NCBI GenBank assembly: GCA_051530055.1
Contig: CM121343.1
Location: 1,830,389-1,894,388 of the forward strand
Direction: 5' to 3'
DNA from: Neoechinorhynchus agilis
Taxonomy: Eukaryota; Animalia; Acanthocephala
DNA length: 64,000 nucleotides
The notes beneath the pieces are model-generated. The model was not told the origin of the DNA. It saw only the letters and a program-made list of their open reading frames with translations, and made no database searches. Below are positions 2,603 to 55,169 of the stretch, one piece after another (the first letter of the stretch is position 1; each line of letters begins with the position of its first letter). The translations under genes and the position numbers were made by a program.

Positions 2603-5386
2603 ATGAAGTTTGCAGTACATTTAGCTGGGCATCTTACACCGGAATGGCAGTCGCAGTATATTGAATATAGGACAATGAAAAATATGCTTTACGAAATTGA
2701 AAAAAATCGTGAATCACGACGAGTAGATATACTAGATGCCAACGATGAAGCGTTTTTTCAATTATGTGAAATGGAATTGGAGAAAGTCAATGCGTTTTTC
2801 TTTGAGAAGATAACTGAGGCAAAACGCCGGTTCCAAACTCTGAAAAATAGTCTTGAATCTGATTTAAGTAAAAAGCAATTAAATGGTAAGAAGCCTGTTA
2901 CTTATGTGTATTTTTTTAATTTTTAAACCTGCACAAATTGCTGGTTTCAGTTCGCTTTAATGGAAGCAAAAAATTTACGCAGGATTACTCTGCATTTTAT
3001 TAAAAGAAGAATTCATTTTTATAATAGCTTGAGTTGCCCAATTGCCGACGTTTCGGAAATTTATTCTTTCCATCTTCAGGGTAACGTTAACAGTCACACA
3101 ATTTGTCAAACGCGCACGTAGAACCCAGCGTTAAACTAACGCTGACGTAAGCAATCAATTATCACACTAATCGTGGAGTTTGAGAGTATTAAACATCTCA
3201 TTGAATTTGATATTGATAATTGGTTTGTCGTGTTTAATGATTAATGCTTCGGCGGTTCTCAGTCTGTGCCTGTCGGTCTCTTTGATAAGGATCTTGAAAC
3301 ATTTCTCAAATGGCGTTGGGTAGGATCCGTTGTGCGATTCATCCATGTGCTTCCTAATAGCGCTCGCTTTATATGTATGTTGGTTGATTCTGTCACTCAA
3401 CTTGCAAGTTGTGTAGCCAACCTAAGACGCGTTACAGCCGTCTTTATTGCATGTAAATTGGTACACAACGTTACAGGTGTCAAGAACTGCAGTTCTGGTT
3501 AATTCGTGAAATTAGCCGTCTATTAATTCTCGTTAATTGCATGAAAATTAAGCACTGATGTGGAAAAAAATCGTATTTCTCGAAAAAAACTGATATAATT
3601 CCGATTTATAGGAAAAGACTCGAGCAATCGACGACGAATGTTAGAGCTGAAAATATCGCTGAGTGAATTGTATTTATTCTTGATCTTGATTCAAAATTAC
3701 CAAGCTTTAAATCTGATGGGATTTGAAAAAATCATTGAGAAGTATGACAAGCTGTTTTCGACCAATCATGGAATGCAATGGCATCAGCAAAGGATTGGAT
3801 CAACGCATCTTTGGAATAACAAAGAAGTTGATTCAATGATATCGGCGGTAGAGAACTTATTTACGTTGCACCTTACGGGAGGAAACCGACATGAGGCAAT
3901 GAAAAGATTGCGGGTACCTCCGTTGAATGAACATCAGCCATCTTACTCAATATTTATAATTGGACTACTTCTTGGAATGTTATTGATGCTTGTTTCTTTT
4001 TTGGTTTTCACTTGCTATGTACTTGATAATTTTGATGGTCTCCTCTTCCCATGGACACCAGCATTTCGCCTCTACCGATCACTATTTCTTATTTGCATGC
4101 AAGTTATCCTTGTTGGAATAAACATCTATGGCTGGGGCATTGCTGGCATCAATTACGTACTGATATTTGAAATCGATCCTCGAAAACACTTGACTTACCA
4201 ACGGGTTATGCGGATTGGAGTGTTTCTAACATTATGTCTTACACTTAGTATATTTGTATTCCTAATGTGTATTAATTTCGATCTGTATCCATTCATGCAA
4301 CCTTTGAGCCTTTATATGTTTTCGCTTGTTTATGTATTCAATCCTTTGCAAATGTGTAAGTCCCAGTCTAAATGCTCATTCACCAAATCATTAATGAAAC
4401 TCATTACCGCTCCGATGCATTATGTAATGTGGAATACTGTTGGGAGGACTTGTTTATACGTTACAATCTCACTTCTAAACTTAACAGTATGACGCCACAA
4501 AGTATCCTTTGCTGACTTTTGGATCGCGGATCAATTGACGAGTCTTACTCTTATTTTCGCCGATCTCGAATATATCGTCTGCTTTTATGCATACAAATAC
4601 GATTGGCGATCTCACAGTTGGCAAAACGATGTATGCGACACAATCATCATTCTGAACGGAATCCTCGTATCATTTCCTGCATGGTGCCGTTTCTGCCAAT
4701 GTATCAGGCGCTATTGGGATTCTGGTCTGGTATTCCCACACGTCTTCAATGCTCTCAAATACTCGACCACTTTCATCAAAGAAGCTACTTACGTGATTTT
4801 TAGGATCAAACACACGCAGTTCACTGGTCCGTCAACAAATCCATTTTTTTATATTTTTGCAATCGCATTCTTTATAGAACAAACCTCTAAGTGTTATTGG
4901 GATCTCAAAATTGACTGGGGATTTTTCGACAAAAATGCAGGCCGTAATCTCTTCCTTCGTGAGCATATCGTCTATCCACACAAAGCTTACTACTATGCAG
5001 CAATTGTTCAAAACATTGTATTGAGATACGTGTGGCTCATTGGTGTTTATCTATCTGCTAAAGTGAACTTCAAGTACAATGATACTTACACGTTTATAGC
5101 AGCTATTTTTGAGGTCATCCGGAGACACATTTGGAACTATTTTCGTCTAGAGAACGAACATCTTAATAATTGTGGATTATTCAGAGCGGTCCGAGATATA
5201 TCCATCGTACCCATCAGTTTAGAGAAATCCATTAACTTGGAGAAACTGATGGATGATAGTGAAGGAGTCCAAAATCGACCAAGAACTGAAAAATTAGTGG
5301 CCGGTGATACATGTAAAAGCTCACAAGGCAACGGAGTATGTAAGCGGCTACATAAAAAGATTAAGAACATCTCATCTAATATGTAA
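2603..5386 (+). CDS. XPR1: XPR1 phosphate exporter (SPX + EXS); exons 2603-2885, 3612-~4425, ~4504-5386
   Basis: MKFA.HL..HLTPEW..QYI.Y SPX start, LRVPPL, FADFW.ADQL.SL, RR.IWN.FRLENEHLNNCG.FRAVRDISI motifs. Confidence 0.97.
3040..3086 (-). ncRNA. Minimal type I hammerhead ribozyme motif (Penelope-associated)
   Basis: CTGAAGA-T-GGAAA/TTTCC stem II-GAAACGTC (palindromic stem III, GUC site), stem I GGCAAT/GTTACC; lies just 3' of a GIY-YIG remnant. Confidence 0.75.
3090..3510 (-). mobile_element. Penelope-like element remnant (GIY-YIG endonuclease, stop-disrupted) in XPR1 intron 1
   Basis: NVVYQFTC..C.AS*VGYT..L.DRINQH...FKIL.KE....RL..AEAL.I....P.IN. Confidence 0.85.
4426..4503 (+). other. 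Candidate non-canonical hairpin intron in XPR1 (78 nt)
   Basis: Removal restores APMHY-V-SFADFW; in-frame TGA inside; stems TGTGG/CCACA and ATACTGTT/AACAGTAT. Confidence 0.75.
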
Positions 5387-5799: not shown

Positions 5800-6980
5800 G
5801 TAGGTGAAATGAACGTGGCTATTGGAATGGGCGACGGTTCTGGTCGGGTGGGTTTGTTGGTGGTTATTGTTTATAGGAGAATTTGTGAGTCATTTCAAGT
5901 TAAGATATCCGAGAAGATTGGGTAGTTTGGCAGAAGGAGCGGAGGTATAGGGAGGTCCGAGGTATTGGAGAATGAAAGGAATTGGGATTGAAAATGGGTT
6001 CAAAGGCGTTGTGATTGTTTGTTGAAAATCTTATAAGGGCATTCGGTGAGAGGAGGAAAATAAATTGTGCAAATTTTAGAGGCGTTTCTATGAAACTTTT
6101 CAAGGCGACGGATTTGTGATTTGGAAAGGATGCAAAAGACGGGATAGCCGTTGGTGGGGAAGGCTAAAATAGAGCTGTAGTAAAATTTGGAGAGATCGGC
6201 CGAAGGGACTCCTAAATGGCGGAAGATTAAGAGGCTGTAAATTTGCGTTTGAGGGTGAATTAAATATGGGAGTCCCATTTCAGATTGTATTGATATTGGC
6301 GACACAGAATCGTTGGATGTCGTTTGGAAAATCGGGATAGGATGTGAGGTTGCGGAAGAGAGAGGTATCATTTCGAGGCATGTGAAGAAATTCAGATGGA
6401 GTTTGTGATTGTTGCAGAAATCTTTTATGTGTGAGAGTTCGTTAGATGTTAAGGAGAGGGAGAGAATGGAGGGTAAAATGAAGCTGTAGTAAAATTTGGA
6501 GAGAGCGGGCGAAGGGACTCCTAAATGGCGGAGGCGTTTGAGTGGGTAGATTATAATGGTATTGTGTTGGAGGGTAAATTTAACATGAGAGTCCCATTTC
6601 AAAATGTATTGATATTGGAGACCGAGGCTCGTTAGATGTCATTTGGAAGATCAGGGTAGGATATTGGGTTGCGGGAGAATGACGGGTTCAACTCGAAGCA
6701 TTTAGAGAAGTTCCGGTGGACATTGACATATAAGAAAAGTTTAGAGTGAGAGAGGTTTGAGGTCGTTTAAGAAAATATAAAAAAGAAGTGGTGACAGGAC
6801 GGTACCTTGAGGTACGCCTTTGGTGAGGGATAGGATGATAGAGGAGGTAGAACGGCAATGAATTTATTGTTGACGATTGCGAAGATAAGATTCCAGCCAG
6901 TGGATCCGCCACAAGTTTAGACCGAAATCGGAACATTCCTGGAAAAGTAGCGTACTTTAGATTTAATACAGACAACTTTT
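5800..6980 (-). mobile_element. Decayed LINE (CR1/L2-like) RT C-terminal fragment with an internal ~320 bp tandem duplication
   Basis: RHLGVPS..LSKFYYS.IL, RLEKFHRNASKIC; 6140-6340 resembles 6460-6660. Confidence 0.7.
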
Positions 6981-10099: not shown

Positions 10100-11720
10100 T
10101 AATGTTGATTTTGGAGTGGATTACGGGCCCGGCCGAACGGGGGAATGTTGGTGGTTATTGTTTGCAGGAGAATTTGTGAGGTTTGATATTTCCTGAGGTT
10201 CATTTCGGTTTTTACGATATCCGAGAAGATTGGGCTGTATGGAAAAAGGAGCGTAAGGGAGGTACGAGGTTAGAACACGAAATTCGATAGATAATAACAA
10301 GTTTCTTTGTTATTGAACAAAAGAATAGGACCCTTGTGTCTTTGTAAACAGCCGAGTTCTGATTTGTTCATTGAATGCGGTTTATTGATTTTGGAGTGGA
10401 TTACGAGCCCGGCCGAATGGGGGAATGTTGGTGGTTATTGTTTGCAGGAGAATTTGTGAGGTTTGATATTTCCTGAGGTTCGTTTCGGTTTTTATGATAT
10501 CCGAGAAGATTGGGTGGTGATCAAGGGAACATAAAAAAGGGGCGTTTTCATCACTTTTTGAAATTTTTTATAAAGACATTCGGTGAGCAGGAAAAAATCA
10601 AATGTGCCAATTTTCGAGCATCACCCGTTCTGGAAGAATTACGCAGTTTTATGATCAGATCCAATTTTGACAAACTCCATCTCGCCAGAATGTCGATGCC
10701 CGGATGTTTTGGAGGTGCAGCTCAGTTTTTCAATGTCGAAAATGAGAGATACTCCGATTGACCTTATTGCGCTTTGCAAGATTCCAAAGTGTTTAATCAA
10801 ATTGTTGAAACTTAGGTTTTCCAAATGAAGATCCAGAATTTAAATTGTCGAAATATCTTTCCTATTTTTATGCCTTTCGCCCTACGAATTGTGACATTGT
10901 GGGGACTATTCAGACAAGACTCCGGATTTTATGGATTTGCCAACTCGGTTAAGTGATTGACGAGGATTATCCGGTGCTTTGCAAAACTGTAATTACTCGG
11001 CACTTTTGAAGTCAAAATGATTTTCTTAGATCCTATTTGTGCTTTTGACGGTTTTGAAGGGTCAAATTCAAAATACAGTCAAAAAAGTGATTCGTCCTGT
11101 CATCTTCTGGCCAATTACGAAGAGCGCGGAGAATCGTTGTCATGGAAACCAAGATCGCAACGACGAGATCCATGGTTCGATCACGGGCCTGAGCAGTGTT
11201 GGATCGATAGACTACACGCGGATATGGTCCACAATCTTGCAAAATGGATGATGCATGCATTGGACGCCGACCCCGCTTCCATTGGTGATTTACAACGAAA
11301 GGAAGAGAGAGTGCGTTACTGCGGTATTGAACTTTTGAGAAACGCTAGGAGCTTCAAACAACATCCCTCTTCAAATGTGGAACAACGTTTAAGTTAAATC
11401 AACAGTACCATTATTCGCGAATGTTGCTATTCGGTTGGGGTTGTCCGTAGTACTGCACAAAGAATGGTCCTCATAAACACAAGTTCTGATTGGATAAATG
11501 AATCTGGCTATTGATTTTGGAGTGAATTGTGAGTCCGGGCGGGTGGGAATATCCGGTTGAATTGGAAGATCCGTTCTGGTTGGAATTGGTGGTTATTCTT
11601 CGCAGAAGCGCTTGTAAGGTTGGTATTTCCTCAGAATCATTTCGGGTTATGATTTCCGAGAAGATTGGGCAGCGTGAGTTATAGGAGGGTGAAACGGATT
11701 GGGATTACGAGTGTTGTGCT
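10100..11720 (-). mobile_element. Mosaic of decayed LINE fragments (tandem copies at ~10105, ~10385, ~11510)
   Basis: Repeated ttgattttggagtggatt...gttattgtttgcaggagaatttgtgagg segment, also found at 5860 and 21680-21765. Confidence 0.65.
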
Positions 11721-14166: not shown

Positions 14167-16087
14167 CTAATTTTTCTCTAGAATGTTTGAGTGATTATTG
14201 ACATCCACCAATAATAGAACTTGTTTCACCCAGTGGGAAACTTCATTTTGACCCGAAGATGAAGACGAGTATAGAATTGCGAACGGAGATCGCTTTAGAA
14301 GAAAAACAAAGTCTTAAATCAGATAAAGAAAAAGCTCACCAGAAGACTCAAAAGATCCTTTCTCTCGCTTGCTTTACGTTTTAGACTGAAAAAGGGGTAA
14401 GGACGAGGTATTCCATGATGGAGGAAGACGCAAACCAAGTGTCGACAAAATCGCAAAATTCCGTACTGAAGTTTGAGCGAGGTAGTGTTGGAGGTACACC
14501 TTCAAATATATGCGCCAGTAATTCGAATATTGCCATTGGCTTTTGAGATTCAAAGTCTGAGATGGAAATGAGTGACGAATGTTAGTGAATAATTCGTACC
14601 ATCTCTTCGAATGCTAAGAGGTTCCTGACTCATGACATGTTTAATATATGCGTCGGAAGGGTAGGGAATGGGGTAACACCCTAACGCGAGCTCCACGAGT
14701 GACAGCCCCAAACTCCATATATCTGACTGAACAGTATACCGAGATCCATCCAGTCTTTCTGGAGCCATGTAAGATCTTGTTCCAATGAACGTATTAGCCA
14801 TTGAATCAATCAGTTGACCAGACACACCGAAGTCGCAAAGTTTGATCTCTCCTTCACTATTCACCAATATATTTGACGGTTTCACGTCTGCTAAACGATA
14901 TCGGTACTTAAAGGTTCATAAGAAAATCATCTCGCCACACCTCTATGTATGATCCTATGTTTCTCTCGAAGGTAATTCAACCCTTCCAATACCTATGAAC
15001 GTTTCATGAAGAAAAGAGATCTGTGAATGGATTACTTACGGATGCCGTAACATAGCCCAATATATTTTCAGGTAATCTAGGGACCTTCCTAAGCATTATA
15101 TCTAATGATCCACCGTCCTATAGGAAACAATCATCGTCCATTTGAAGTAGTCCACTCACCATATACTCCATGCACATATGAATTTCCCCGTTGTGAGTGA
15201 ATGCACCATACGAACCAACGATGTAAGGTGAGTTATATGGCACTTTTGTTTTTGAAAGAACCCATACAAAAGTATCCGGGAGTACAAAGATGCAGTACTG
15301 ATAGCTCCCGAATAATCTGCTGGCGAATCAAAGGCTTGACTTCCAAATGGATCATCTAATGCACGTAAATAAGAGATAACCGAGGATCGATCACGAACTA
15401 TAAACCAACCAAAAAAAGCCAATCTTATAACTAAGAAGAGAAAGTTTCTTCGTAGGAATAACGACCAAAAAATCATTTGCGGGTGGAGGGGAGGAAATCA
15501 CGCCACAAAAAAAAACTACAGCCGTGATTCGGAAGAAAGTTTGTATTCAGATCTACACTGTCGCAAAATGTCTTACTGTTGTAAATCTAAATTTGCAAGA
15601 ACTGTCGCGAGTATTCACGGGTGCGTCTCAACCCATTTAACTTCCTTCAACTGACCTTTCGAGCCATTATTTGCCCCGTGGCCCTATGGCTCACTTTCCA
15701 AACAATTCCACTGGTCCCGTGACCCAACTCATAAAGATCATTGAGCGAATCAGCACTAAGTTCCCCGATAGCTTCCTTAGACTTGAAAAAATCGTTCATT
15801 CGAGATCTCTGAATATCGGTACAGTTCATGTGACTGAATTGACGTTGTAGCCAATCGATGCTTTTGTTCGTGGACGCAGCCGCGGCGTACAATCCATTCT
15901 GAAGAAGAGATATTTCCTCGCAAATGGGATCCCTAATAACACTCTAGTTTTGGGATTTCACTCGAAAAACGCCTTACGGCTTTCCTTCGTCTAATCGAAT
16001 TCGATTATCGATGACGTCTTTGTTGGCTCCACCATCTTCGGAGCCAGGTAAGATCAATCCCATTACGTTCTTCCTCCTTCTAGACAT
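14167..16087 (-). CDS. MAP2K1: MEK1/2 MAP kinase kinase, about 10 exons
   Basis: Basic N-terminal D-domain [73 protein letters not shown]. Confidence 0.97.
15235..15283 (-). other. Candidate non-canonical hairpin intron in MEK1 (49 nt)
   Basis: Removal gives VLHL-C-NSPY (cf. VLHECNSPY); stem GG(A)TACTTTTGT/ACAAAAGTGCC. Confidence 0.65.
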
Positions 16088-16270: not shown

Positions 16271-19108
16271 ATGAGCTCACTCAGTGATGGTGGAGCGGGT
16301 AATGTTTACATGGAGCGACTCATTCCGCTGGTCAATAAGTTACAGGATGCATTTGCTGGAGTTGGCGCCGGTCGATTCGAGATTGATTTGCCTCAAATCG
16401 CCGTAGTCGGTTCTCAAAGTGCCGGAAAGAGTTCGGTACTTGAGAACTTTGTAGGCCGGGATTTCCTCCCACGTGGATCTGGTATAGTCACTCGGCGTCC
16501 TCTTATTCTTCAGCTTTTGTTTCATCCGAAGGCTGAATTTGGTGAATTTCTGCATTGCCGCGGTCGCAAGTTTACCGACTTTAATCAAATTAGGAAAGAA
16601 ATCGAAGATGAAACCGATCGCCTAACTGGCACTAACAAAGGAATATCTAATATTCCAATCAATCTTCGTATATATTCACCCCATGTCCTTAACCTTACAC
16701 TGGTCGATTTACCCGGACTTACTAAAGTTCCAATCGGCGACCAACCAGCTGATATTGAAGTTCAAATTCGATTGATGATATTGGAATATATTAGTCGTGA
16801 TAACTGCCTTGTTTTAGCAGTAACACCCGCCAATAGCGACCTCGCGAATTCTGACGCTCTCAAGTTAGCCAAAGAAGTGGATCCAAGTGGAATGAGAACT
16901 ATAGGCGTACTCACTAAACTTGATTTGATGGATGAAGGTACTGATGCTCGGCATATTTTAGAAAACCGATTATTTCCACTCAGACGTGGTTATGTTGGTA
17001 TCGTCAATCGAAGTCAACGTGATATCGACGGCAAAAAAAACCTCCAAGCTGCTTTGGCTAGCGAGCGACAGTTTTTCTTAAGTCACCCTTCCTACCGCCA
17101 CATGAGTGACCGAATGGGCACTGCGCATTTACAACGAGTACTCAACCAACAACTAACTGAACACATCCGGAATTGTTTACCGGTGCTGCGTAAAAAACTT
17201 CAAGATAGTTGCCTCAGCCTTGAGAAGGAAGTGGGCGTTTTTAAGAGTCTAAACCTAAATGATCCAAGTCGAGCTACCAAAACAATGATGACGCTTGTTC
17301 AAGCTACCAAGACTGATTTTGACAGAATCATCAATGGTAGTTCGGCCGCGGAAATATCAACCACTGAGTTAAGCGGAGGTGCCAAAATTAATCGAATATT
17401 TCATGAAAGATACCCATTTGAACTTATAAAGATCCAGTATGACGAAAAGGAACTACGAAAAGCAATCACTTATGCGATCAGGAATTCATTTGGCGTTCGA
17501 CCCGGACTTTTCACACCCGATCAAGCATTTGAGGCTATCGTACGTCATCAATTAGAAAAGCTACTTTCACCATCCTTAAAATGCGTTGATCTTGTCTGTG
17601 CAGAACTCATGAATATAGTTCAAACTGTAACTGAACGAATGGTCGTATATCCCAAATTACGCGATGAAGTTGAACGATTCGTTACTCATTATATAAAAGA
17701 ACAAGAAGAGAAAACAAAAGAGGATATTTCACGATATGTTCAACATCAGTTGTCGTATATTAATACTAATCATGAGGACTTTATCGGATTTGCTAATGCC
17801 GAACGAAAACCTGTCGGTTCACACGGCCGTGCGGCGAGCGGTGACCATAAGAAGGTGGCCGTCCAAATTATTCGTAAAGGGTGGCTCCGTATGCACACCG
17901 GAGCAAGCTTTATCAAAGGTGGAGCCATGGATTTCTTTTTCGTCCTCACCACTGAATCCCTGTCTTGGTATAAGGATCAAGACGAAACCGATAAGAAATA
18001 CATGATTCCTCTTGATGGACTTAGAATTCGGGACGAAGATTCAGGATTCATTTCAAGGCGTGCGAAATTCTCCGTTGTTCATACTGATGGAAGGTAAGAA
18101 CGTCGTAGTTCGCATTTATTCTGATCGCATCCGCTCAGGAATATCTATAAGGAACACAAACAATTGGAGTTGTCGTGTGATGATGTCGAGGAAGTAACTC
18201 ATGCAGTCATCACACTCACTTTTCGATCCATCCCACTTTCGGGAGAAAGGTTTTTCAACCCTTCAGATAAAACATTTTCATGTATTCAGATCGACAGTAC
18301 GCGATCCTTTTAATCGGCCGTGTAGAAAAAGTGTTATAGATATTTTTACGTAATGCTAAATAATCGAGATCCATGAAACCGGGAGGGCGATTTCACCTTA
18401 AAAAAAGATTGATCTTACTTTATACGTTGATGAATGCATCGTATAGACAGTTGGAAGGCATCATTTCTAAGGGCTGGTGTGTATCCGATTCAAAACCCAG
18501 TATACGACGAGAGCGGTCAATCTGGCCGAGGAATTGGCGACGATGGTACTATAGCATCGGTAGATCCGTTTTTGGACAGACAAGTTGAGACGATTCGGAA
18601 CCTTGTTGAATCCTATATGGATATAGTGAACCGCACAACCCGGGACATGATTCCGAAGATTATAATGCATGACTTAATTTTGCAGACGAAGGAGTATATG
18701 GCTCAAGAAACCCTAGCGCATTTGTACGGGCTCGATATCCATGAAATGATGGAGGAGAACCCCGAGGAAGTGGAACGCCGTGATCAGACCTTGAAACTTT
18801 ACAGTGCGACCAAGGACGCACTCACGATAATCCAAGAGATTGTAGCGAATACATCAACTAAAGCGGTGCCTCCTCCTGTAAACACTGACTGGATAAAGAC
18901 GGAAGAGAAATCTGGGACGGTGGCTGCGCCTACACGAGTAGCACCAACACGTCCACCGCCCATGTCCAGTGCACCTCCACCACTACCTAGCAGGAACGCA
19001 TCGCTGCCTCCGCCGCTCATTCCGACAAAATCGCGTGATCAACAACATCTTCATCATCATCATCACGCTGAACCTCAACCGCCGCCATTGCCCGATCGAG
19101 ACTTTTGA
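16271..19108 (+). CDS. DNM: Classical dynamin (GTPase, middle, PH, GED, PRD); exons 16271-18093, ~18139-18195, 18445-19108
   Basis: [17 protein letters not shown] GTPase motifs; [13 protein letters not shown]; proline-rich tail. Confidence 0.98.
18196..18444 (+). other. Candidate non-canonical hairpin intron in dynamin (249 nt)
   Basis: Removal gives DVEE-V-DSWKASF; terminal inverted repeat ATGCAGTCATCA/TGATGAATGCAT. Confidence 0.75.
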
Positions 19109-19140: not shown

Positions 19141-22100
19141 CTACCAATTCGCGTCTTTTACAATTCCACCAGCTGCAGCCAAGTGGCTATCCTTCATGAG
19201 GTACAAATCAACCTCACGGGCGACTCGACGTCCGTCAGCGATCGCATGCACAATCGCCGAAGCGCCGTGGCGACAGTCACCACAGGCGAACAAATTCCGA
19301 ATTTTGATGCCATTCTGTTTTGGGTTCACTACATCTCTTAGTACTCCTCGAAGTGGGTTAGAATCTTCGCCATTTTGATGACTCTGGGTGCAAATGAACA
19401 CCATGTCACATGGAAGCTCAATGTCAACGCCGCCATTTTTAGAATCCACAGCAATGACTCCAAGGACGCGCCCGGTGTTGTCCCCGATAATCTCCCTAAC
19501 TTCAGACACGTTCAACAACACATCCTTTTCCGATAATATTGCAGCCTCCTCACATGCAGTTGCCAACTCAGCCTTCTGCGCCCATGAAACTGATGGTGCA
19601 TCAACGGTCCCCGATTGAACAATAACACATTTAATCCAGCTAATCTTTTCCCTTACGAGAACCATTATGCAATCAGCCAGCGACGATGCATACTTTGCTT
19701 CGCTGATCACTACTACTCTCTTTCCCATTACCTTAGGCCGATCTTCGTACTTGGAGTTGCAACCACTTGTTGATACTCTCAGATGATTAGCCAGAAAACC
19801 CGGCGCAGTAAATACGTTGTCCAAATACCGACCTTTTATCACTAACTCTTCTGGATCATCCGATCCGAGGGCCAAAATAACGGCCGACGATGAAGTCAAG
19901 AGATTGTTGAAATGATTTAGAGTGACTTCGTAGTTTACCAAAAATGTGATTCCTTCCTTTCTCAAGATGTCCACACGTCGCTCAATCACCTAATCGCAGA
20001 ACTAAGAAGTCTCACTCATGACAAACGAAGAAATACCTTCGGACTTAATCGAGTTGGTAGAATTCCGAACCGCAACAAACCACCCACATTTTCATTCTTG
20101 TCATAGACGTAAACGGAATGACCTGCTTTGTTTAACTGAGCAGCAGCAGCAAGACCTGCAGGTCCAGAGCCAATGATCGTAACCCGATGCCCCGTTCTAT
20201 GAGGAGGGACCTCTGGTACGATGTACCCTTTTTCGAATCCATATTCGGCTATCATAAGTTCAATGTTCCGTATTGTAACTGGATCCGGTTGGAATACACA
20301 CGCAGTTTCACACGTTGCAGGGCATACCCTTCCCGTAAACTCGGGGAAATTATTACTTTGCAAGATCCTATGAAGTGCACTTCGGTAATCGTTATCAGTC
20401 ACTAATTTTGTAAAATCCGGAATGACCACCCCAAGTGGGCAGCCCGATTCTGACGATTGACAAAATGGTACCCCACAATTTATACACCTCGAAGCTTGAC
20501 ATTTAACCAGAGTTTCCAGGGACTTCATATCCAGAACCTCTTCGAGATCGTTCATCCTCTCCTTCACGTTTCTACACACCACAGCTTGGCGTTCATATAT
20601 CATAAAACCACGGTGCTTTAATGTGGATCCAGTATCCTCCAAATCAGGACACAACTCATACTCATCTCCCTTTGCACTCTTCTCCGAAAATTCTTCAATT
20701 GTATTTGACATTTGAGCACTAATTCCAGCAGGTGTAGAATTCATCAATGCCGCTTTGTGGCGTTCACTGTCGTGAGACAATATCTTTTATTTCATCGGCG
20801 TGAATCTTCGTTCGAGTACATTTTACTAACCTTAACAAACTTTTTACACGAATTGTCGAAATCATCGAGCAGAGCTTGGGCAACGCAACTACCAGTCAAC
20901 TTTGCGAAATCTTCTAGAATCCCACGCAATTGCTTCTTTGATTTATAACTTTCAATTATGGATTCGGTGTGCAAATTAGCCATATTACAACGCGAAAGTA
21001 CCATCTCTTCATTCTCATCAACCTTCAAAACGTCTCGTATGGCTGCTGAACTATAGACAGATTTTATGTGTGTGTGTAAAACCATACATTTTAATTTAGA
21101 GAATTCCAATTATTTTACGATCGATCGTTCGCACACACTACAGAAACATGGCTTTAAAAGATCAAACTGATCAGTGCTTTAGATTTTCAATTTCTTCCCT
21201 GATGACACAATGCATCCCCCTTATTTGCTTTAGGTTTAAAAAAGAATAAACGTGCAATGAATACAAAGATATGGGCTCCTAAGCATACAGAAATCGTGGC
21301 TTTGGTGTGCAAAAGTTCTCCCGTAAAATCCATAGCTTCGATTGTCGATATGTGAGGTACCGGGGGTGGGGAATTGACTAAATTTGTTGTCTTGGTCTTC
21401 ACTTGGTACAGAACGTTTTATTAAAGGTGTTTCTAACCTCTTCGGATTCATTATCACTTAATGCCGGAATCTGAAGATGAGATTGGCCGAGCGTCGACCT
21501 GCAAAGCACAATCAATTGAGGAAGGTGTCAAAGCCACCGAGAAATGTTGTTATCATTATAATATCCGGAATGACATACCCGACCGTACAGTGGCCTAAAC
21601 AAGTAAAACGTTTTATTTTAGAGAATTATATTGATTCATTATCTGTTGCCATGGCCCAAAATGAATCGGAGGAAAGGCGTAACCTCACAAATTCTCCTGC
21701 GAACAATAACTACCAACTTTCCCACGAAATCCACTCCAAAATAAACAAACACATTCAAGGAACTTCTCAGAACTCGAGTATTCATGGGGACCCAGGGGTA
21801 AATGGTTCCTCTACTTTGAACAATAAGACGTTAATGACAGCAGCGTTGAACAAACTGACCACTCAATCAATCTATGATTATAGCACCTGAGCACGATAAC
21901 GTTAGGCGATAAATTAAAAAAGACTTGAACGACCAACGAGGTTGATTCAAAAAAAGAGCAACGACTAACTAAATGCAGTTCTGAATGGTCAAGATCCACA
22001 CATGCCATGGACGATCAATAGCGAGAAGTATACTAAAACACTTAAAAAACTGACGATGAACCCTAAGAGGTTTGAAACGCCTTTAGTAAAACATTCTCTA

Positions 22101-25100
22101 CCAAGCGAAGACCGAAACAATAAATCTAAGTTAGATTGTAGTTTACGGCGCCAGAGTTTTTTTAAATTATTATCTAAAGTGAAGAATGCAAAACACAAGC
22201 ATAACTGCATGTTCTCAGCTTCGAGAGCAGCAATCATAGCCCCAAAGTCAGCAGCCATCACCTTAAATCACACCGCCAGCCATTCCAGCAGCAAAATTTC
22301 TGCCAACTTTACCAAGAATGACCGCTATACCAGAGGTCATATATTCGCAACCATGGTCACCGCATCCCTAGATGAGTATAGATAATATATCGGTTAAAAT
22401 GAAGGAAAATCGCTAACCTCACAAACTGCAACTGCTCCCGAGTTGCGAACGCAGAATCGTTCACCTACCATGCCACTGAAGTAGGCACACCCACTTATGG
22501 CACCGTACAACAATACGTTGCCGGCAATAATATTTTCATTAGATTTAAAAGTCGAGCTTAAGGGTGGTCGGACAACTATTTTGCCACCCGATAGACCTTT
22601 GCCGGCGAAATCGTTCACTTCACCGTATATCGTAAAAGTAATTCCTTTTGCCAAAAACGCACCAAAGCTCTGTCCACCGGTGCCTTCGAGGTGTATGTTG
22701 ATTGAGTTATCCGCCAGCTTAGAATCCAATCCCAATCCGACGATATATCCGCTAATCAAAGCACCAAATGATCTGTCGGTGTTCTTGATTTTCAAACTAA
22801 AATTACAATTTGTGGAACGTCCTTTTGACTGAAGCAGTTCGGTTTTTATCCTATCAAGCAGCGTGTATTCCTATCCGATAATCACTTTTGTTTAATAGTA
22901 TTTAAAGAGCATGTACGTACCAATCGATCCTTCACGTTGAATTTAGCTGGTGTTTGTGGAGGTAAGGTCGAAACCGGTGGCGGATTCAGAAAAAACGAGA
23001 AGTCGAGATGTAATGCTTTGTTACTGAGAGCAGGATTCAGGCGAAGTAAATCCGTTCTTCCAATTAAGTCAGAAAAGAATTTGACCCCAAGAGAGCACAT
23101 TATTTGTCGAACCTAAGAAATGAAATATGATCAACTTCCAATTCATATCCCAACTACAAGCGGATCCGCTTCATGGATCACACCAAGTATAAGTTTGGAG
23201 CGTGAAACACTTCGTAGAACTACGATTTATCACTCATGGCATTAAGCCATTTTTGTGCTGAACAACTGCTACAGTTAAGTTGCAAATAAATTTGCATCGA
23301 TATCTAATTTAGTAGCCGAACATTAATATTGCACTCGCAAAAGATATACTACCCTCAAGGGAAGATCTTTAACGTGTCATTAGATTTCAAAATAGCTTAC
23401 GTCGAAATAACGGCCTTGGATGTAATTTTATGTTAGAAGTACACATGAACTCTCATAAACTATAAATGGGTGCATCGCGCCCTCCGTACCCATCCAAACG
23501 GGCGGTCCGCTAACTAACCTCATTAGCAACAAAATTAAAGTAATTAATAATAGCATCCTCTTGCCCAGTATACCGTCTTCTCAGTTCTTTGTCCTAATGA
23601 TAAAAGAATCAGATTTTTTGATCCATGGACAAACAAAGACTTACTTGGGTTGCTATTCCTACATGGCAAGTATTAAGATGGCATTTCTTGCACATTGTGC
23701 AACCGATCGCTATCATAACGCAAGTCCCAAAGCTAAACTTATCAGCGCCCAATAACGCTGCCTTCACAACATCCACCCCAGTCTGCAGTTGTCCGTCAAC
23801 CTCTAGAGATACTTTGTCTCTAATATTATTCGTTACAAACACTCTATGAGTTTCATTGATACCAAACTCCCATGGAAGACCGGCATTCCGAATGCCCGTC
23901 CAGGCACTACCGCCGGTTCCACCACCATGTCCGGATATTGTTACTGAATTAATACCACTCTTGACTCCGCCAGTGGCAATCACTCCAACACCATGGGAAG
24001 AAACGAGTTTCAGTCCTATGGAGGCATCTGGGTTGACACTGCGAAGGTCGTATACTAGTTGCGAGAGATCTTCTACGCTGTAGACATCGTGATGAGGAGC
24101 CGGACTACGATCGGCAACCCAACTTGTACAATTTCTTGTTTTTGCAACTACCTCGTCCATCTTAAACCAAGGAAGCTCGCCACCCTCACCAGGCTTCGAA
24201 CCTTGCCCAATTTTTATCTGCAATTCAGCAGCCTCGGAAATATACTGTAGTGAAACACCAAATCGGCCAGAGGCAACTTGCTTAATGTACGAAGAATACC
24301 CTGTCGCTGGTTGACCGCCTTCACCACAATTACTTTTCGCGTTAAGTTTGGCCATAGCTCTACCTATTGTATTGAAAGCTTCAATGGACACGGAACCGAA
24401 ACTTATAGCAGCTGATGAAAAACGGCTTAAAATGCTTTCCACGTCTTCAACTTCATCCAAAGTTAGCGGTTTTTTATCTTTCGACGGAAACGCAAAATCC
24501 AACTGACCTGAAAGCGTGCAGCAACGCGAAAGTTCAGAATGAAACTTTGAAAATTCGTTGTAAGCAGCAGAATCATTTTGTCGAACCGCCTTTTGCAAGA
24601 GCCTTATAGCCTTAGGAGCGTATAAGTGATACTCACCACCGTCTCTCCAATTAAACAAGCCATAATTCTGGGCAAATCGGATATCACCGACACGATCAGA
24701 GTAGGCCAATGTGTGTCTGTGCAATACCTCTGATGCGAGCAGCTCGTAGGATACGCCACCCAAACGAGAAGTCGTACCGCTAAAGCATTGTTCTACAACA
24801 TCATCAGCTAAACCAACAATTTCAAAACTCTGAGCACCCTTATAGCTTTGTAGGGTAGATATTCCCATTTTTGCAAGTATATGGAATATTCCTTGGATAC
24901 AAGTAAATCGATATCGATCAAAATGCTTGTCGGACGTATTCTCATAAGAGCTGGGAAAAACGCCCATTCGACGATATTGAGCTATTAAGTCGAAAACCAT
25001 GTATGGGCAGATTGCATCAGCACCAAAGCTCAATAGAACCGCCATTTGATGAACATCTCGAGCTTCACCTGATTCGACAAAGAGACTACATTTCATCCTG

Positions 25101-27845
25101 CTCTTTTCGTTCACGAGAAATTGATGAACCGCTCCCACTGTTAACAATGCACTCACTGGTACACTACCAGGACCCACGCAACGGTCAGACAGTATAATCA
25201 TATTGTAACCTTGGTTCACTGCTTCAAGACATTCCTTGCATATTATAGGAAGAGTATCACGAAGTCCGTTGCTTCCCGATTGTCTGCTAAAGAGCATATT
25301 TATAACTTTTGAACGAAGACCATGATGTGCACTAAGTTTTATGACCTCGAGCTCTATCGGAGATAAAATTGGGGAATCGAGCCACAATCTTCTACATTGC
25401 TCACTCGACGGATTTAATAAATCGTGTTCCGGACCAATGGGGCATCCAAGCGACATGACAATACGTTCGCGAATCGAATCCAAAGGTGGATTAGTCCCCT
25501 GGGCAAACTTTTGTTGAAAATAATCGTATGAAAGACGACTGCACTGTGAGAGACAAGCTAAAGGAGTATCATCTCCCATCGATGCTGTTGCTTCGCGCGT
25601 GTCGCGAATCATTGGCAATAGAACTTCATTAAAACTTTCGGTATTATACGCGAAAAGTATCAAACGTCGATCTGTCTCTTTAAACTCACTTACGACACGG
25701 AGATCCTTTCGAGGTTCCTTCTGATGTTTACCATTACCACTGCGCGACCCATCGTCAACACCGGTGATTGGGGATGGAGGTTGTTCGAAAATGCCAGTGT
25801 CACTCAAATGACCAGGTAATAGGTGCTTTTCCAATTTTTCGCGCAGTGTTTTCAATGTAATTGCTCGTGAAAGATACGCTTCGGTTTGAACATCCTTGCA
25901 CATCGCGATTTTCAACTCGTCATTCAGAATCAGTTTACGAGATTGTAGATCAACCATAATCATTTGACCAGATCCTAATTTTCCTTTACACGTAACAGCG
26001 CTTTCGTCCACATCCACAAGTCCAGCTTCATTTGCAACAAACAGCATTCGCTCGTTCCTATCGTCCACCACTTTAAATCTGACTGGTCGTAAACCGTTCC
26101 GATCAACGAGACTACCACAAATCCTGCCATCCGTAAACATCACTGCAGCTGGACCGTCCCAAGGTTCCATAGCGAAACTATTGTATCTAACATACCTAGC
26201 GATCCGCGCCTTATCTGAGTCTCCAGTTGGAATCAGATCATCGGTGCCCAGAAATCCCTCCGGAATAAGTAGGAATAGCGTTTCGGCTAAATTTTTTCTA
26301 CCGGCTTTGTGAATGAACTCAGCAGCATTGTCCAAAAGGCTCGTATCGGATACTTCGCCCATATTGCTCTCCAGAATGGGGTAAATATCGGACATATGTT
26401 TGAATCGATCGCTGGCCAACATTCCTTCCCTGCTGCGCATATGATTGCAGTTTCCTCGTAAGGTATTGATTTCTCCATTGTGAGCCATGACACGGAAAGG
26501 TTGAGCCAACTCCCATGTCGGGTATGTGTTTGTAGCGAACCGAGCATGGACGATCGCGAATGGACTGACAAATTCAGGAGACTCCAAATCAATGTAATAG
26601 TGCCAAAGTTGATTTGCATCGAAGCGGCCCTTATGGAAGAGAAAAGTAAGAATTACTTATTAAAATTGCTTTAGTAAACCTTGTAAACAATGGTTCTGGT
26701 CGATAGGCTACAAATGTAGAATCTATTAGTAGCTTTTATAATTTCATCTGAACTTCTTTTACGTAGTATAAGCACCTTTTTGGTCGTATTGATGCGATTA
26801 GAGGTTAATTGGAGTATAAAATAAGCTTACCTGTCTTTCTAAGTAAAGGTCAGATTTGGACAAAATCAAGAAGGCCTAAAACGAATTTTAGTTTGTGAAC
26901 GTTAAAATAATAAAATATGTTTGAACATTGAATTGTTTATAAACTGTGGTTGTTTTGTGGCGAATGATTGATTTTATTTTAAAATCAAGCACAAGATTGT
27001 GTGGTTCCGAAACCAATTGGATTCAATAAATGAAATCATTTTAATTTCTTCGCCAAAAAACCGACTAATAATAAAATAATTTAAATCAGGCATTGGGAAT
27101 GATGAGTGGAGAATTAGGCAACCACTGCTGAGCATTTTGGGCAAGAGCTATTATAAAATATTCAAGTGGTTATGGACATTTGACAACAGAATTTCTTAGT
27201 GAACTCTCATTCTCGATGAGTAATGGAAAAGTCTACGAAAACGTCTAGATACGCGAAAGCCTTACTTGAAGAATATACGGTTCATCCTGACGCGCTCCAA
27301 CTCCAATTGCATCGTGATTGACGGGGACAACTCGCCAACATATCACCTATGAACCACATGAAAGGTTCATTAGAAAATATCGATACACATACGGTCACGA
27401 AATGTTCGGACGCTATTTCGTTAAATCGTTGCTTACAATATTCGGCATTGGCTGCAGTCATAAAGAACAATCCGGTTGCATATTCCCCGAAGGTGGGAAG
27501 ATCTACCGAATAACTCCTCCTAAAAACATTGAAATATTACACTAAAACGATCAAAAAGAACCTCAAAAGCGATCTGTACATTGCATCGGGAATTCTCAAC
27601 AGGATACCAGCACCGTCGCCCGAATTTCGGATACATGCTCCTCTGTGAGCCATGCCCAAAAGCATGGATTTTGCGTGTAAAATCACCTAAGTACCAATGT
27701 GTTAAACAAATATTCGGACCAACATTCAAACCTTGCGAGACGCAATACAATCTACGCTAACGACCATACCAACTCCACACTGCCCCCGCTGCAGTCGCGT
27801 ACCAGGAAGTGGACCGATTTCAGTCAATTCTTCTTTAAAACTCAT
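19141..27845 (-). CDS. GLT1: Glutamate synthase (fused alpha+beta, eukaryotic NADH-GOGAT type), about 13 exons
   Basis: [55 protein letters not shown] domain, C..CG.PFC...[13 protein letters not shown]. Confidence 0.96.
21034..22264 (-). other. Candidate non-canonical hairpin intron in glutamate synthase (1231 nt)
   Basis: Removal gives GMAGGVI-Y-VL (cf. GMSGGIAYVL) instead of in-frame TAA; perfect 11 bp terminal inverted repeat ATGGCTGCTGA. Confidence 0.7.
21375..22135. mobile_element. Two inverted ~85 bp Penelope-type ends with degenerate hammerhead motifs (21375-21458, 22050-22135) flanking a LINE fragment
   Basis: CTGACGA-TGAACC-CTAAGA-GGTTT-GAAAC; about 75% identical inverted copy; same family as 43.0 kb. 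Confidence 0.7.
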
Positions 27846-29588: not shown

Positions 29589-31367
29589 TTATCTGTTCAG
29601 TTTCATGTGCGCTTTAACGAGGTCATTGGTGTGCAGGGCAGCCATGAGTGACACTTCAGCGCCCAGTACTACGCTCGCTATGAGCATACTGAGATTTTTG
29701 GCATTTGATCCGATTTCACGTTTGGAAGGCCCATCCAAGCCCATCATACGAAGACAAGCAGCTTGCGGTTTTAGTGAAGTTCCCCCTCCGACGGTTCCAC
29801 ACTCAATCGATGGCATTGTGACGCTGACCCTAACTTTCCCACCTTCCTCGATTTCAAACCATGTCATACAACTGCTGCTGGAAACTACCTGGGCGATGTC
29901 CTGTCCACAGGCAGCGAAAATGGCAGCTACGACGTTAGCAGCATGAGCATTAGAAGTAGAGTGATTTGAGTGGGGAGTAATTAATGTAGAGGGGCGGGAT
30001 GGAACCCACCAATAGAATCACTCTAACGTGAAACAGCTCGCGCCAGCTTGGCTGGCAGCCAGGGCACTTCCCATGAAGTTCTTAATAAGATTCAATTTTA
30101 CAAGATCCGTAGGTTCGACCTTCAGACGTGATCTAACGGCACTGGCATCTATAACAGCTTCAGCGATCACGGACTTTCCTCGTCCATCGATCCAGTTTGA
30201 ACTGGACGCTTTCTTATCCACGCAGTAATTACCACTCAAAGAGACCAACTGAAGATCAGGAAATTGGTTTTGTAGGCATTCGATACATTTCTCGCATCCT
30301 TTTGATACCATATTCATCCCCATGGCATCACCTGTGCTTGCCATAAATTTCGCAAATATATAGCAGCCGGCACTTAGAGTAACTCTGGTGGCTAACAAAC
30401 GGGCATATCTACTAGTAGACGTGAAAGCTTTTTCGAGGGCACATCGTCCTTCCTTAGACTCAATCCATTGTTTAACTTTGGTTGCTTCAGCTAAGCAACT
30501 TGCTTTTAAGACTGGACCTCGACTCATAAAATCGGAAACAACAGTGCATTGAATGCCATTCGGAGTTTCGCTGAGAACCTTGCATCCTCGTGAAGCACTA
30601 GCAATCAAGGCTCCTTCGGTTGTTGCTAGAGGTACATACCAAAGTTTATTGTTCATTTTTATTGGTCCCACGAATCCAACGGGTACTTGAATAAAACCCA
30701 GTGTATTCTCACAGCATTTCCCTTCAATACTTCTAAAGTCGTATGATTCATGGGGTATTCCCTCGACATCCACACCCAATGACTTCAAATAAGCTCTACG
30801 AAGGCAGACACGATCCTTAGCTTCTAATAACAAACCTTCAGCAACTCTAAGACTAAGGTTTCCATCAGTAGTTACTTTTTGAAGGACACTTTTCACATCC
30901 ATACTTATATCCGTAGTTGCATCAAAATCAATCTGTGGCACGTCCATTATAAAATCGGCATAATCATCACCGACACCCTCAATCGTCCCGCTCTGCTCCC
31001 TTTGATCGTAAGTGCTAAGTTCAACCATTACGTCATATAAAGTCAGGCATATTATCACCCATAAAATTAAACGAATCCGGAACTTCAAACTCAGAAACGT
31101 TCTATCAAAAAGTTTACCACCCTTTAGGGCGTCACTAATTTCGGTCATGGGGGAATCCGACGATGTTTCTGCGTCATCATGATCGCTGCGATCTCCATCA
31201 TTATCGAAAATCGCCGTCACCAATAAAGTCTGATTCCTTAATTCAGTCACAAAACCATTCCATTTGTCCAATGAATTAAGGGCCAAGAGGCTAAGGAGGG
31301 CTACCATTACAATCCACACCAATCGCATATTCCGACGGAAATATAGCTTGCTCATTTTACTTGCCAT
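29589..31367 (-). CDS. HMGCR: HMG-CoA reductase (class I catalytic domain, short 2-TM N-terminus); exons 31367-30030 and 29951-29589
   Basis: CEN.LG, LATTEGALIAS, TGDAMGMNMVSKG, SGNYCVDKK, NAHAAN, GQD.AQ, GTVGGGT, H(MKLNR). Confidence 0.97.
29952..30029 (-). other. Non-canonical hairpin intron in HMGCR (78 nt); no usable AG acceptor
   Basis: In-frame TGA inside; first downstream AG falls after NAHAANVV; perfect 10 bp inverted repeat TAGAGTGATT/AATCACTCTA. Confidence 0.85.
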
Positions 31368-42250: not shown

Positions 42251-43011
42251 TGCTGATGTTGTTACCGGTTTTGATTTTAGTTCAGCGAGGGGCTGACAAT
42301 GCAGAGCAAACCAAAGAATACTATCGTTTGACAGTTGAAGACCACATTGGTTACGCATTTTGTTGGCCTGCCCAAAGAATATTCTTAAATAGGAGGTTCA
42401 TTTGGCTTTATTCTAGAACCTCACGTTCGCTTCCCATTTGCTGACAAATGTAAGCGGGGGCTTTGTCTGGCACCCTGATCTTGATTCATTTGCATTCTGC
42501 AACAAGCTAAAGAGTTTTCGAATTGTAAGCTGATAAAAGGAAAAATGCGACTAAAACCTAAATATTTTTTATGCCCTTAGAACAGTAGATCTTGAAAAAC
42601 TAATATGCAAACCTTTTTAATGTGTATCCTCAAAAATCTGACGTGCACTCGTGGGCAAATCTTGAGAGCAATGGTAGAATTGTTTTGATACGGGGAAAAG
42701 TTAAAAGAATATACTGATTCCAATATTTCGGCACAATATTCCTAAATGCCTAATCCATTTGTCCGTGAGTGGAACAAGCATTCTATAGTTGTTCCGTCCA
42801 CTGTATTGTCCCTCATCCAATATTATAACATCCTCGATTCCATAAAAAAGCGGCAATATGTGTATTATTTTATCCACATTACAGTTCGTCCACTGGTAGG
42901 ACCCTTGATATGTCATTCGCTGCATCTATGCTGAAATTAACTCTTGCCTCAGTTATATCAAAATGTCGATATGTGAGCCATCGGGGTATATGATTAGCAT
43001 TATTTTTTATT

Positions 43012-43085
43012 AAAAACGTTTCGAACCTCATAGGGTTCGTCATCAGTTCCAGTATCCCGATGAGGTTCGAAACGTCTTTAATAAA
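43012..43085. ncRNA. Hammerhead motif on - strand plus truncated inverted copy on +
   Basis: CTGATGA-CGAACC-CTATGA-GGTTC-GAAACGTT; partial gatgaggttcgaaacgtc on +. Confidence 0.65.
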
Positions 43086-43389
43086 AAAAATTAAAACAAT
43101 AATCTTTCTCAGTTATTAAGCAAATTATATTGCTAGTGTTAAAAGAATTTCGCTTGCTATCATAGTACCTGAAATCAAAGGATTAATCTTATAAAAATAA
43201 TATAAATGTATTGCTTTACCTATTCTAAGATCCAACTTATCACAAACAGTAGCTGTTATTATCGAGAAAAGAGTGACATTTTATTCGGTCAGCGCAGTAT
43301 CTTTGACAATTTCATTTAGATTTATTAATTCATACCATCAATTTCCTTTTTTCTACTTGTTAAATTGCGTATCCGCAAAGGATTAGCAG

Positions 43390-43510: not shown

Positions 43511-43861
43511 AATCAATTGGGAGTTGTGTGTTAGATTATCGCATATCACCAACTAAAATCAAATAAATCGATACCTTTAACAGTCAGCCATGTCGATTTT
43601 CGCATACGCTAACCAGTGTATTGTGCAAAGATAACGACTAGCAAATAGTAGTCGCTTTTGAAAGAAAGCGTCACTACCGAAGACTTATTACTCAGTTTCA
43701 ATTTGCGCATAAATTTAATTTTAACCAGCTGAAATCGAGCTTAGAGATCACCCGATAACCTGAACCATTAAGGCGACAATTCAAGCAGAAATTTAGCTGA
43801 GGAACGAAAGCGTTCAAAATGTAGAGAGCTATTAAGGAATTACCATTTCGCCCCTTTTGCT

Positions 43862-44045
43862 GTGGAAACGTATGGAGCCTTTGAACCATCAGCGTTCACT
43901 CTCCTCGACGATTTGGCACGAAGGACGAAAAGGATGACGGGGGAAACGCGCTCGAGAAATTTCCTCGCTCAACAAATCGCAATTGCGATACAGCGAGGGA
44001 ACGCTGCCAGTATTCTGGCGACGTCGGGATGTTTACAAGAATGAA
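43862..44045 (+). mobile_element. CRE-like RLE 3' fragment (distinct subfamily)
   Basis: VETYGAF...LLDDLARR...TGETRSRNFLAQQIAIAIQRGNAASIL. Confidence 0.9.
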
Positions 44046-45890: not shown

Positions 45891-46099
45891 TGTAAGATTA
45901 TTCTTTTTTTTCACCATACACGGCTCAAAAGAATAATCTTACACACACATCTATCAAAAGGCTTAAATAATAAAGACATTTTTCCTTTTTTGGTCTTCGG
46001 TGAGCTGTCACCACGAAGAGGGAACTCAGGTTCCGAAATATTTAATTCAATAGTTAATGTTTAATTCTCGGGGTGGTGACAGCTCACCGAAGACCAAAA
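45891..46099. mobile_element. Two adjacent short palindromic elements (17 bp arms 45891-45943; 26 bp arms 45988-46099)
   Basis: TGTAAGATTATTCTTTT/AAAAGAATAATCTTACA; TTTTGGTCTTCGGTGAGCTGTCACCA and its reverse complement. Confidence 0.85.
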
Positions 46100-55080: not shown

Positions 55081-55169
55081 TTGATATTGAATTAATGATG
55101 GCAGGATTAGTTCTTTGGAGTTTGGCAGGAACTTTCAATTTTATTTCGCTGTTTAGATTCCGTGACATT

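Follow-up and report, generated by a model that had tools for sequence, protein, structure and literature searches.

A putative structure-associated, non-GT-AG intervening sequence in the glutamate synthase gene of Neoechinorhynchus agilis, and comparable pieces in neighbouring genes

The question raised by the locus described here is how a gene that reads into a stop codon inside a conserved motif could still give rise to its protein. The fused NADH-type glutamate synthase (GOGAT) gene of the acanthocephalan Neoechinorhynchus agilis lies on the minus strand, at about 19141-27845, of the 64,000-nt stretch that was analysed (assembly GCA_051530055.1, contig CM121343.1, positions 1,830,389 to 1,894,388 of the forward strand); this whole stretch is the window referred to below, and all coordinates are counted from its first letter. 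A piece of 1231 nt, at 21034-22264, interrupts the gene, and what has to be decided is where it is cut out and by what kind of process. Judged from the sequence and its protein homologues, the piece is probably excised from the RNA in a non-canonical, structure-associated manner, with cuts at or close beside the junction by which the conserved protein is regained. What can be seen directly are the sequence features, the conservation at the junction, the break of the published annotation at this point, five more pieces of this sort in the window, and strong end pairing that is specific to the class; that the piece leaves the RNA, where it is cut and which enzyme might act are inferred.

Junctions of the glutamate synthase piece

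A preliminary description of this DNA had the exon run through GMAGGVI into TAA and had the joining of ATTT to ACGTT restore GGVIYVL, and both statements are correct for the minus strand. The TAA occupies 22265-22263, and the upstream ...GTGATTT (ending at 22265) followed by ACGTTTTG (starting at 21033) reads GGVIYVL, with a slide of one A being possible. Excision of 21034-22264 yields GMAGGVIYVLKVD, which is in register with the GMSGGIAYVLD of 119 homologues. The perfect 11-bp inverted repeat in that description is also present, exactly 6 and 5 nt from the proposed junctions. The features, in the order in which the gene is read, are:

22368-22417, minus strand: canonical 50-nt intron before the upstream exon
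22265-22367, minus strand: upstream exon, including the first base of the Tyr codon; unspliced, it reads into the TAA at 22265-22263
21034-22264, minus strand: intervening sequence, 1231 nt, at the conservation-restoring junction; ends AA..AG, or AG..GA after a 1-nt slide
22259-22264, minus strand: 5' tail AAGGTG, the 6 nt from junction to stem, with a donor-like AAG/GTGATG 3 nt inside the junction (a slash marks a cut or joint)
22248-22258, minus strand: 5' stem arm ATGGCTGCTGA of the perfect 11-bp inverted repeat
21039-21049, minus strand: 3' stem arm TCAGCAGCCAT, which includes the AG of the alternative GT-AG acceptor
21034-21038, minus strand: 3' tail ACGAG, the 5 nt from stem to junction
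20831-21033, minus strand: downstream exon, (Y)VLKVDENEE...KKFVK
20784-20830, minus strand: canonical 47-nt intron after the downstream exon

With G-U pairs and one bulge the helix grows to about 14 bp and reaches to within 3 nt of each junction. The 11-bp stem by itself amounts to -19 kcal/mol and the duplex between the two ends to -25.9 kcal/mol. When the terminal 30 nt on either side were shuffled 1000 times, neither the length of the stem nor the energy of the duplex was ever reached (p < 0.001). The joined transcript predicted from this junction would contain the spanning sequences GTGATTTACGTTTTG and GGCGGTGTGATTTACGTTTTGAAGG, and the unspliced boundary reads GTGATTTAAGGTGATGGCTG.

An ordinary spliceosomal intron has to be weighed against this junction. 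Here an inverted-repeat element within the exon would be spliced out by cryptic GT-AG sites, the donor lying 9 nt upstream and the acceptor 9 nt inside the 3' end, and GTGATTT would be a relic of the old exon:

21043-22273, minus strand: rival canonical intron G/GTGTGA...CAGCAG/CC, in frame, giving GMAGAIRDVL; predicted spanning sequences GGCGCCATACGAGAC and GGAATGGCTGGCGCCATACGAGACG

Such an alternative had been pointed out from the start as one that loses the conserved G and Y, and so it does: it is in frame and free of stops, the pair of sites is shifted by 9 nt, and GGVIY becomes GAIRD. Its acceptors are in tandem (ttcag/cag/), the NAGNAG variant giving GMAGAAIRDVL, and donor 22273 with these acceptors, yielding GMAGA(A)IRDVL, provides the only in-frame GT-AG solutions that retain the flanking residues. 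Canonical introns of 300-726 nt do exist in the window, and this intron would account for the coding-like look of the 9 nt that follow its donor. On the other hand, the four columns at stake hold G (100%), I (97%), A (97%) and Y (97%) across the 119 homologues; the conservation-restoring junction fills them with G-V-I-Y in exact register, whereas the GT-AG path fills them with A-I-R-D, exchanging the invariant G and the 97%-conserved A and Y for A, R and D. Its acceptor AG would be buried within the perfect 11-bp helix, end pairing comparable to the -25.9 kcal/mol duplex is seen in none of the 19 canonical introns examined, and the CAG/C acceptor is unlike those introns, whose acceptors are mostly TAG/G. 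The annotation, guided by RNA sequencing (RNA-seq), passed this intron over as well. An ordinary GT-AG intron thus appears unlikely. The proposal of a non-GT-AG intron is indirectly supported in so far as its junction restores the invariant G and the 97% Y and the annotation skips the GT-AG path, and is qualified by the GT-AG alternative that stands beside it.

Other junctions were tried and rejected. A canonical intron AAG/GTGATG...ACGAG is in frame but retains the TAA, and a junction that yields GGVIRDVL is one residue out of register. AT-AC combinations of the U12 type give poor products, and there is no U12-like 5' motif (RTATCCTT). Sites of the IRE1/HAC1 type (CNG/CNGN) are found as CUGCUGA and CAGCAGC inside the stem arms, and their product would keep the TAA. 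No tRNA-type bulge-helix-bulge was found at the GOGAT junctions.

The published annotation of the 46.2-Mb genome was made with BRAKER2 and RNA-seq intron hints (PMC12690905). Its first GOGAT model (1465 aa) stops at the TAA at 22265-22263, and the other (P0001) begins at an ATG at 21085, within the intervening sequence; as the models end at the stop and restart inside the piece, no GT-AG intron hint can have bridged it. This is the pattern expected when a canonical intron hint spanning the gap is absent. In a protein search across the junction, the top match was a 616-aa N. agilis 'hypothetical protein' from the same contig, 100% identical. A homologue that is 46% identical (P0005, from an SRA run) has no intron at the site and is too distant to matter.

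That the annotation models two genes might also mean that the piece is not removed at all, the gene being broken by an insertion, a young pseudogene, or expressed as two polypeptides. Parasites do lose metabolic genes (PMC12690905), and the GOGAT sequence departs from 11% of invariant columns. Nevertheless, some 2000 codons are open on both sides, and the catalytic and cofactor motifs are intact: the catalytic Cys, the Fe-S cysteines and the NAD motif are all present, and the remainder of the gene has a 992-aa open exon together with 12 ordinary introns, all of them GT-AG and either 42-55 nt or about 390-406 nt long. Because the rest of the gene is intact, the transcript must be repaired somehow. 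The break also falls within the beta-helix (GXGXG) domain, whereas bacterial enzymes are divided at the alpha/beta boundary; the insert must be of some age, as it contains a nested, diverged element; and similar interruptions occur in the essential genes for HMGCR, dynamin and MEK. Retention of the piece is therefore quite improbable.

Five further pieces and the pairing of their ends

Five more non-GT-AG pieces were found in the window by way of broken gene models, frame and colinearity, before any look at secondary structure, and in all of them removal restores a gapless alignment to human proteins. They lie in HMG-CoA reductase (HMGCR, two pieces), dynamin, XPR1 and a MEK-type kinase; dynamin, the kinase and HMG-CoA reductase are, together with an ABCF protein, neighbours of GOGAT in the window. 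For each piece the duplex energy was computed between the first and last 30 nt or fewer:

30014-30050 and 29952-30001, minus strand: HMGCR pieces of 37 and 50 nt, GSALAAS / IGGF / NAHAANVV...; predicted junctions CCAGC/ATTGGTGGGTTC/AATGC, spanning sequence CTGGCTGCCAGCATTGGTGGGTTCAATGCTCATGCT; end duplexes -10.5 (HMGCR-1) and +1.4 (HMGCR-2) kcal/mol
18194-18442, plus strand: dynamin piece of 249 nt, GTAACT...CATCGT, ...SCDDVEE / IDSWKASF, gapless against human dynamin-1; predicted junction GAGGAA/ATAGAC, spanning sequence GATGTCGAGGAAATAGACAGTTGG; end duplex -13.6 kcal/mol
4421-4498, plus strand: XPR1 (SPX-EXS) piece of 78 nt, APMH / KVSFADFW, with a perfect 8-bp repeat, ATACTGTT and AACAGTAT; predicted junction ATGCAT/AAAGTA, spanning sequence GCTCCGATGCATAAAGTATCCTTT; end duplex -18.7 kcal/mol
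15235-15283, minus strand: MEK1/2-like kinase piece of 49 nt, LHLC / NSPYIVG, with a perfect 8-bp repeat, ACTTTTGT and ACAAAAGT, and TA on both sides; sequence spanning the predicted junction CTGCATCTTTGTAACTCACCTTAC; end duplex -12.2 kcal/mol

The two HMGCR pieces enclose a micro-exon of 12 nt, which encodes IGGF in another frame. The path through it aligns without gaps to human HMGCR (2q1l), whereas the catalytic NAHAAN motif is lost on all GT-AG and GC-AG paths. The 3' ends of the two pieces are linked by a perfect repeat of 10 bp (TAGAGTGATT and AATCACTCTA), which encloses the micro-exon. The BRAKER model stops at a TGA at 30018, and the last exon was called as an antisense gene of 113 aa (29605-29946). 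For dynamin none of the canonical paths is colinear, and even the closest AG lies 4 nt beyond the place required; the inverted repeat of this piece matches at 10 of 11 positions and lies 7 and 3 nt from the ends. A good-looking GTAATG..AACAG intron in XPR1 shifts the frame, and a helix of roughly 24 pairs runs through both junctions into the exons. The MEK piece is ambiguous, as a 43-nt GT-AG option with an insertion of 2 aa exists; here BRAKER split the gene into models of 131 and 242 aa and lost one exon. The published annotation thus splits or truncates at least three genes within 64 kb, namely GOGAT (in two), MEK and HMGCR. In the genes surveyed, roughly one in four or five intervening sequences would be non-canonical.

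What most of the six pieces share is strong pairing of their ends. A duplex of -10.5 kcal/mol or stronger was found in five of the six, as opposed to none of the 19 canonical introns, whose values run from -1.0 to -8.5 kcal/mol (Fisher p = 1.1e-4; Mann-Whitney p = 0.0085). No common end dinucleotide was found among the six, and microhomology at their junctions is 0-2 nt. The preliminary view that long-range pairing defines the ends is therefore supported only in part: strong end pairing is specific to the class, but the distance from stem to junction is variable and one HMGCR piece has no hairpin of its own. Terminal pairing is a mark of the class, and through it the two ends are probably brought close to each other; whether it also sets the exact cut sites is at most a possibility. 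A window-wide scan for perfect inverted repeats at transitions between open reading frames (ORFs) returned 467 of at least 9 bp within 1.4 kb, which is too noisy to use.

The canonical introns (for example 22368-22417, 23113-23518 and 26876-27265) are either short, at 42-55 nt, or long, at 300-726 nt, and their ends pair less than shuffled controls (most shuffle p > 0.6), as if terminal structure were avoided.

Non-canonical ends with inverted repeats would also suit removal at the DNA level: like the internal eliminated sequences of ciliates, the pieces would be limited to the germline and precisely excised from somatic DNA, and what was assembled would be the unprocessed form. In five of the six pieces one junction or both are straddled by TA, and adult females consist largely of germline tissue. 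Programmed elimination is, however, not known in Acanthocephala, and the pieces lack consistent junction repeats or pointers, so that this scenario is highly improbable. Assembly errors, or heterozygous insertions picked by the assembler, might be considered as well, the assembly having been built on long error-prone reads. Against this, the 64 kb contain six to eight interruptions, 37-1231 nt long, that become exactly colinear once removed; open frames as long as 992 aa are undamaged; comparison with Illumina reads gives a k-mer completeness of 96%; and the HMGCR micro-exon cannot come from indel errors. An artefact or haplotype polymorphism is barely credible as the source of these pieces.

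Some further observations concern these and similar sites. The downstream exon begins with A in all six cases. GOGAT and XPR1 share a donor-like GT motif that is set in from the 5' junction by exactly 3 nt, and in XPR1 and dynamin an AG follows the 3' junction at exactly 4 nt. In an RCAN/calcipressin gene (45142-45350, minus strand) the frame switches between two overlapping ORFs, and a 38-nt GT-AG option exists; the switch coincides with a perfect 11-bp hairpin, GTATCGATTCT and AGAATCGATAC (45246-45256 and 45282-45292, with a 25-nt loop). In an innexin gene (about 264-315, plus strand) a 51-nt GTACAT...TTGTAG intron is 2 nt out of frame with respect to the two exon ORFs, and the true junction would have to differ from it by 2 nt on one side (AG..AG or GT..AT). 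RCAN and innexin are too divergent as proteins for their junctions to be placed.

Interior, origin and consequences

The interior of the GOGAT piece had been described as transposon debris comprising a LINE fragment and Penelope ends. These names were not borne out: there was no Pfam match in any interior reading frame, reverse-transcriptase, endonuclease and GIY-YIG families included (E <= 0.1), and neither a hammerhead nor any other Rfam family was found, with the window searched at gathering threshold and a weak chance match to a snoRNA being all that the insert returned at E <= 1. The broader term, transposon debris, is nonetheless apt, as the interior contains a repeat element:

21379-22128, no strand assigned: nested repeat element; terminal inverted repeats of 81 nt, 81% complementary to each other

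Elsewhere in the window the family of these arms is found at 43002-43086, and the core of the element at 10103-10463, 11466-11646 and 5848-5889. The nested element is younger than the stem that flanks it, yet its arms match at 81% only, as compared with 11 of 11 in the stem. Under equal neutral decay, and assuming that the nested arms began identical, the perfect stem has P of about 0.1 or less, which makes its preservation by selection, as first proposed, plausible but weak.

Several observations weigh against non-canonical, structure-associated removal. The GOGAT protein differs from its homologues at 9 of 81 invariant columns (11%) and at 22 of 122 columns that are at least 98% conserved (18%), and owing to this divergence conservation by itself favours the proposed junction just about 7:1. 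The rival GT-AG signals resemble others in the genome, as the MEK gene seems to employ both a GTGTGG donor and a CAG acceptor. The break in the gene model could stem from low expression together with a penalty on a 1.2-kb intron in a genome whose introns are mostly of 50 nt. Among the matches of the protein search across the GOGAT junction there was no transcript of N. agilis, nor did any relative exceed 51% identity, and the dynamin protein query had no acanthocephalan sequence among its matches. As regards the class, HMGCR-2 is without a terminal hairpin of its own, stems lie at varying distances from the junctions (6/5, 7/3, 13/8 and 10/7 nt), no shared sequence family was found among the six pieces, and XPR1 can also be explained, through a 1-nt indel, as a canonical intron with an assembly error. 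The outer 136 and 345 nt of the GOGAT piece have no second copy within the window, and no target-site duplication (TA, TTAA or 8 bp) was found between the flanks TTTAAGGTG and ACGAGACGT, the junction repeat being 1 nt.

A class II transposon with terminal inverted repeats, or a miniature inverted-repeat transposable element (MITE), with a target-site duplication was rejected as a candidate, as the flanks differ, and membership in an introner family of the Amoebophrya, Fritillaria or Micromonas type was rejected as the six pieces lack mutual similarity.

Non-canonical removal could have come about as follows. The piece most likely originated by insertion into the GOGAT exon between ATT T and AC GTT, and would since have been cut from the transcript, at or next to the insertion point, by a process that does not need GT-AG. 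Removal would be associated with the pairing of the two ends (11 perfect bp, about 14 when extended, to within 3-6 nt of both junctions), and a repeat element would later have become nested inside, leaving the terminal stem untouched. Either of two candidate mechanisms might carry this out: a cut-and-ligate process like the SOS splicing described below, set off once the inverted repeats have paired, or a spliceosome to which the helix presents the two ends side by side and which accepts them. For the wider proposition we lean, by a small measure, towards acceptance: N. agilis, and perhaps the Acanthocephala generally, may possess a substantial class of fixed non-GT-AG pieces, mostly clamped by hairpins and located in conserved exons of essential genes, that would be removed exactly from mRNA by a structure-guided pathway. 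That pathway would be either a spliceosome with relaxed demands or SOS splicing that has been enlisted for everyday gene expression.

If so, part of the acanthocephalan 'gene loss' and of the low BUSCO scores would be an annotation artefact, and claims of massive gene loss and lists of drug targets drawn from these models would need re-checking. The genome study, whose RNA-seq comprises 74 libraries with about 2.1 billion read pairs and a Trinity assembly, gives the eukaryota BUSCO as 58.4% for the genome and 71.0% for the transcriptome, with 13.7% and 7.5% fragmented, respectively (PMC12690905); a genome score below that of the transcriptome is the effect expected of unrecognised non-canonical interruptions.

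Outside genes, the window also holds perfect inverted repeats of 55 bp (51972-52026 and 52075-52129) and 27 bp (45988-46014 and 46073-46099), which are probably foldback or MITE-like elements. Three related ORF fragments on the plus strand (43772-44041, 47346-48133 and 55059-55505; ...FVPFGVETYGA...LLQDL...QRGNAAS...) look like remnants of one mobile-element protein family; Pfam gave no match for the two of them that were searched.

Comparison with known systems

Phenomena of this kind are already known, as SOS splicing, introners and nonconventional introns, and full-text literature searches found no report of non-canonical introns in Acanthocephala. What would be new is that they occur in this group, that they have become fixed in conserved exons of essential genes, that their stems are short and begin some way inside the ends, and that family structure and boundary repeats are lacking. 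Should transcripts confirm the junctions, this would be a protostome animal in which structure-associated introns without signals are a normal part of conserved genes.

The nonconventional introns of euglenids (Milanowski, Guminska et al.) have variable non-GT-AG borders, and their ends pair into a stable structure. As proposed for N. agilis, end pairing brings the exons together, and such introns coexist with conventional ones in the same genes; they belong, however, to a protist lineage, for which a motif at the 3' end and circular products of excision are reported. Long yeast introns are reportedly closed by 'zipper' stems, long-range pairing that shortens the effective intron length and that is credited to Goguel and Rosbash in 1993. 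The likeness lies in a long intron being shortened in a genome used to short ones, but the yeast introns keep GT-AG and pair from the 5' splice site to the branch point, whereas the GOGAT pairing covers the candidate 3' splice site.

In Amoebophrya more than 60% of introns are non-GT-AG, with no dinucleotide consensus, and an inverted repeat of 8-20 nt joins their 5' and 3' ends (PMC7789003). This too is a parasite genome, in which the splice position varies relative to the hairpin and standard gene predictors fail (PMC7789003). The Amoebophrya introners, on the other hand, are those of a dinoflagellate, form repeated families and have direct repeats of 3-5 nt at their boundaries, in contrast to the unrelated N. 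agilis pieces with 0-2 nt. In Fritillaria borealis the non-canonical splice sites are the inverted repeats of transposons, and the introns are removed by the U2 spliceosome (Henriet et al. 2019; 10.1101/2025.08.15.670264). Here the resemblance is to an animal with a compact genome whose non-GT-AG introns derive from elements with terminal inverted repeats. In Fritillaria, however, the repeat ends are themselves the splice sites, AG/AC and AG/AT are preferred and 95% of introns are non-canonical, as against about one in four in the N. agilis genes surveyed, where no dinucleotide preference is visible and the stem begins 3-13 nt inside the ends. A spliceosome tolerant of such helices has been argued for in Amoebophrya (PMC7789003) and Fritillaria (10.1101/2025.08.15.670264), and also in euglenids.

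The best-fitting known process, by analogy, appears to be SOS splicing, reported by Zhao, Kennedy et al. (Nature 2025) as the spliceosome-independent, RTCB-ligase-dependent excision of elements from exons in C. elegans and human cells (PMC12779559). Pairing of inverted repeats is its sole trigger; it uses sites near the repeat termini that are rarely GU-AG, and it requires AKAP17A, CAAP1 and RTCB (PMC12779559). The SOS substrates studied carry repeats of 54 nt, are recent or engineered insertions, and are excised imprecisely with many isoforms, whereas the stems in N. agilis are of 8-14 bp and the pieces are old, which is a further point against the reading favoured here. Natural targets have so far been untranslated regions or a pseudogene; the N. 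agilis pieces lie in conserved coding exons of essential genes, which would need a dominant and exact product. Yet in other respects the GOGAT piece resembles an SOS substrate: it interrupts an exon, splitting the GMSGGIAYV motif and breaking the reading frame; its ends carry inverted repeats able to pair (11 bp perfect, about 14 bp with G-U and a bulge); SOS splicing operates in animals; and, just as its sites lie near the repeat termini, the GOGAT junction predicted from protein colinearity would fall 5-6 nt outside the arms. If this is correct, the N. agilis pieces would be natural, evolutionarily fixed coding substrates for SOS-type splicing or for a relaxed spliceosome like that of Fritillaria, and the question left by the SOS-splicing study, whether hairpin-triggered excision protects genes over evolutionary time, would become testable.

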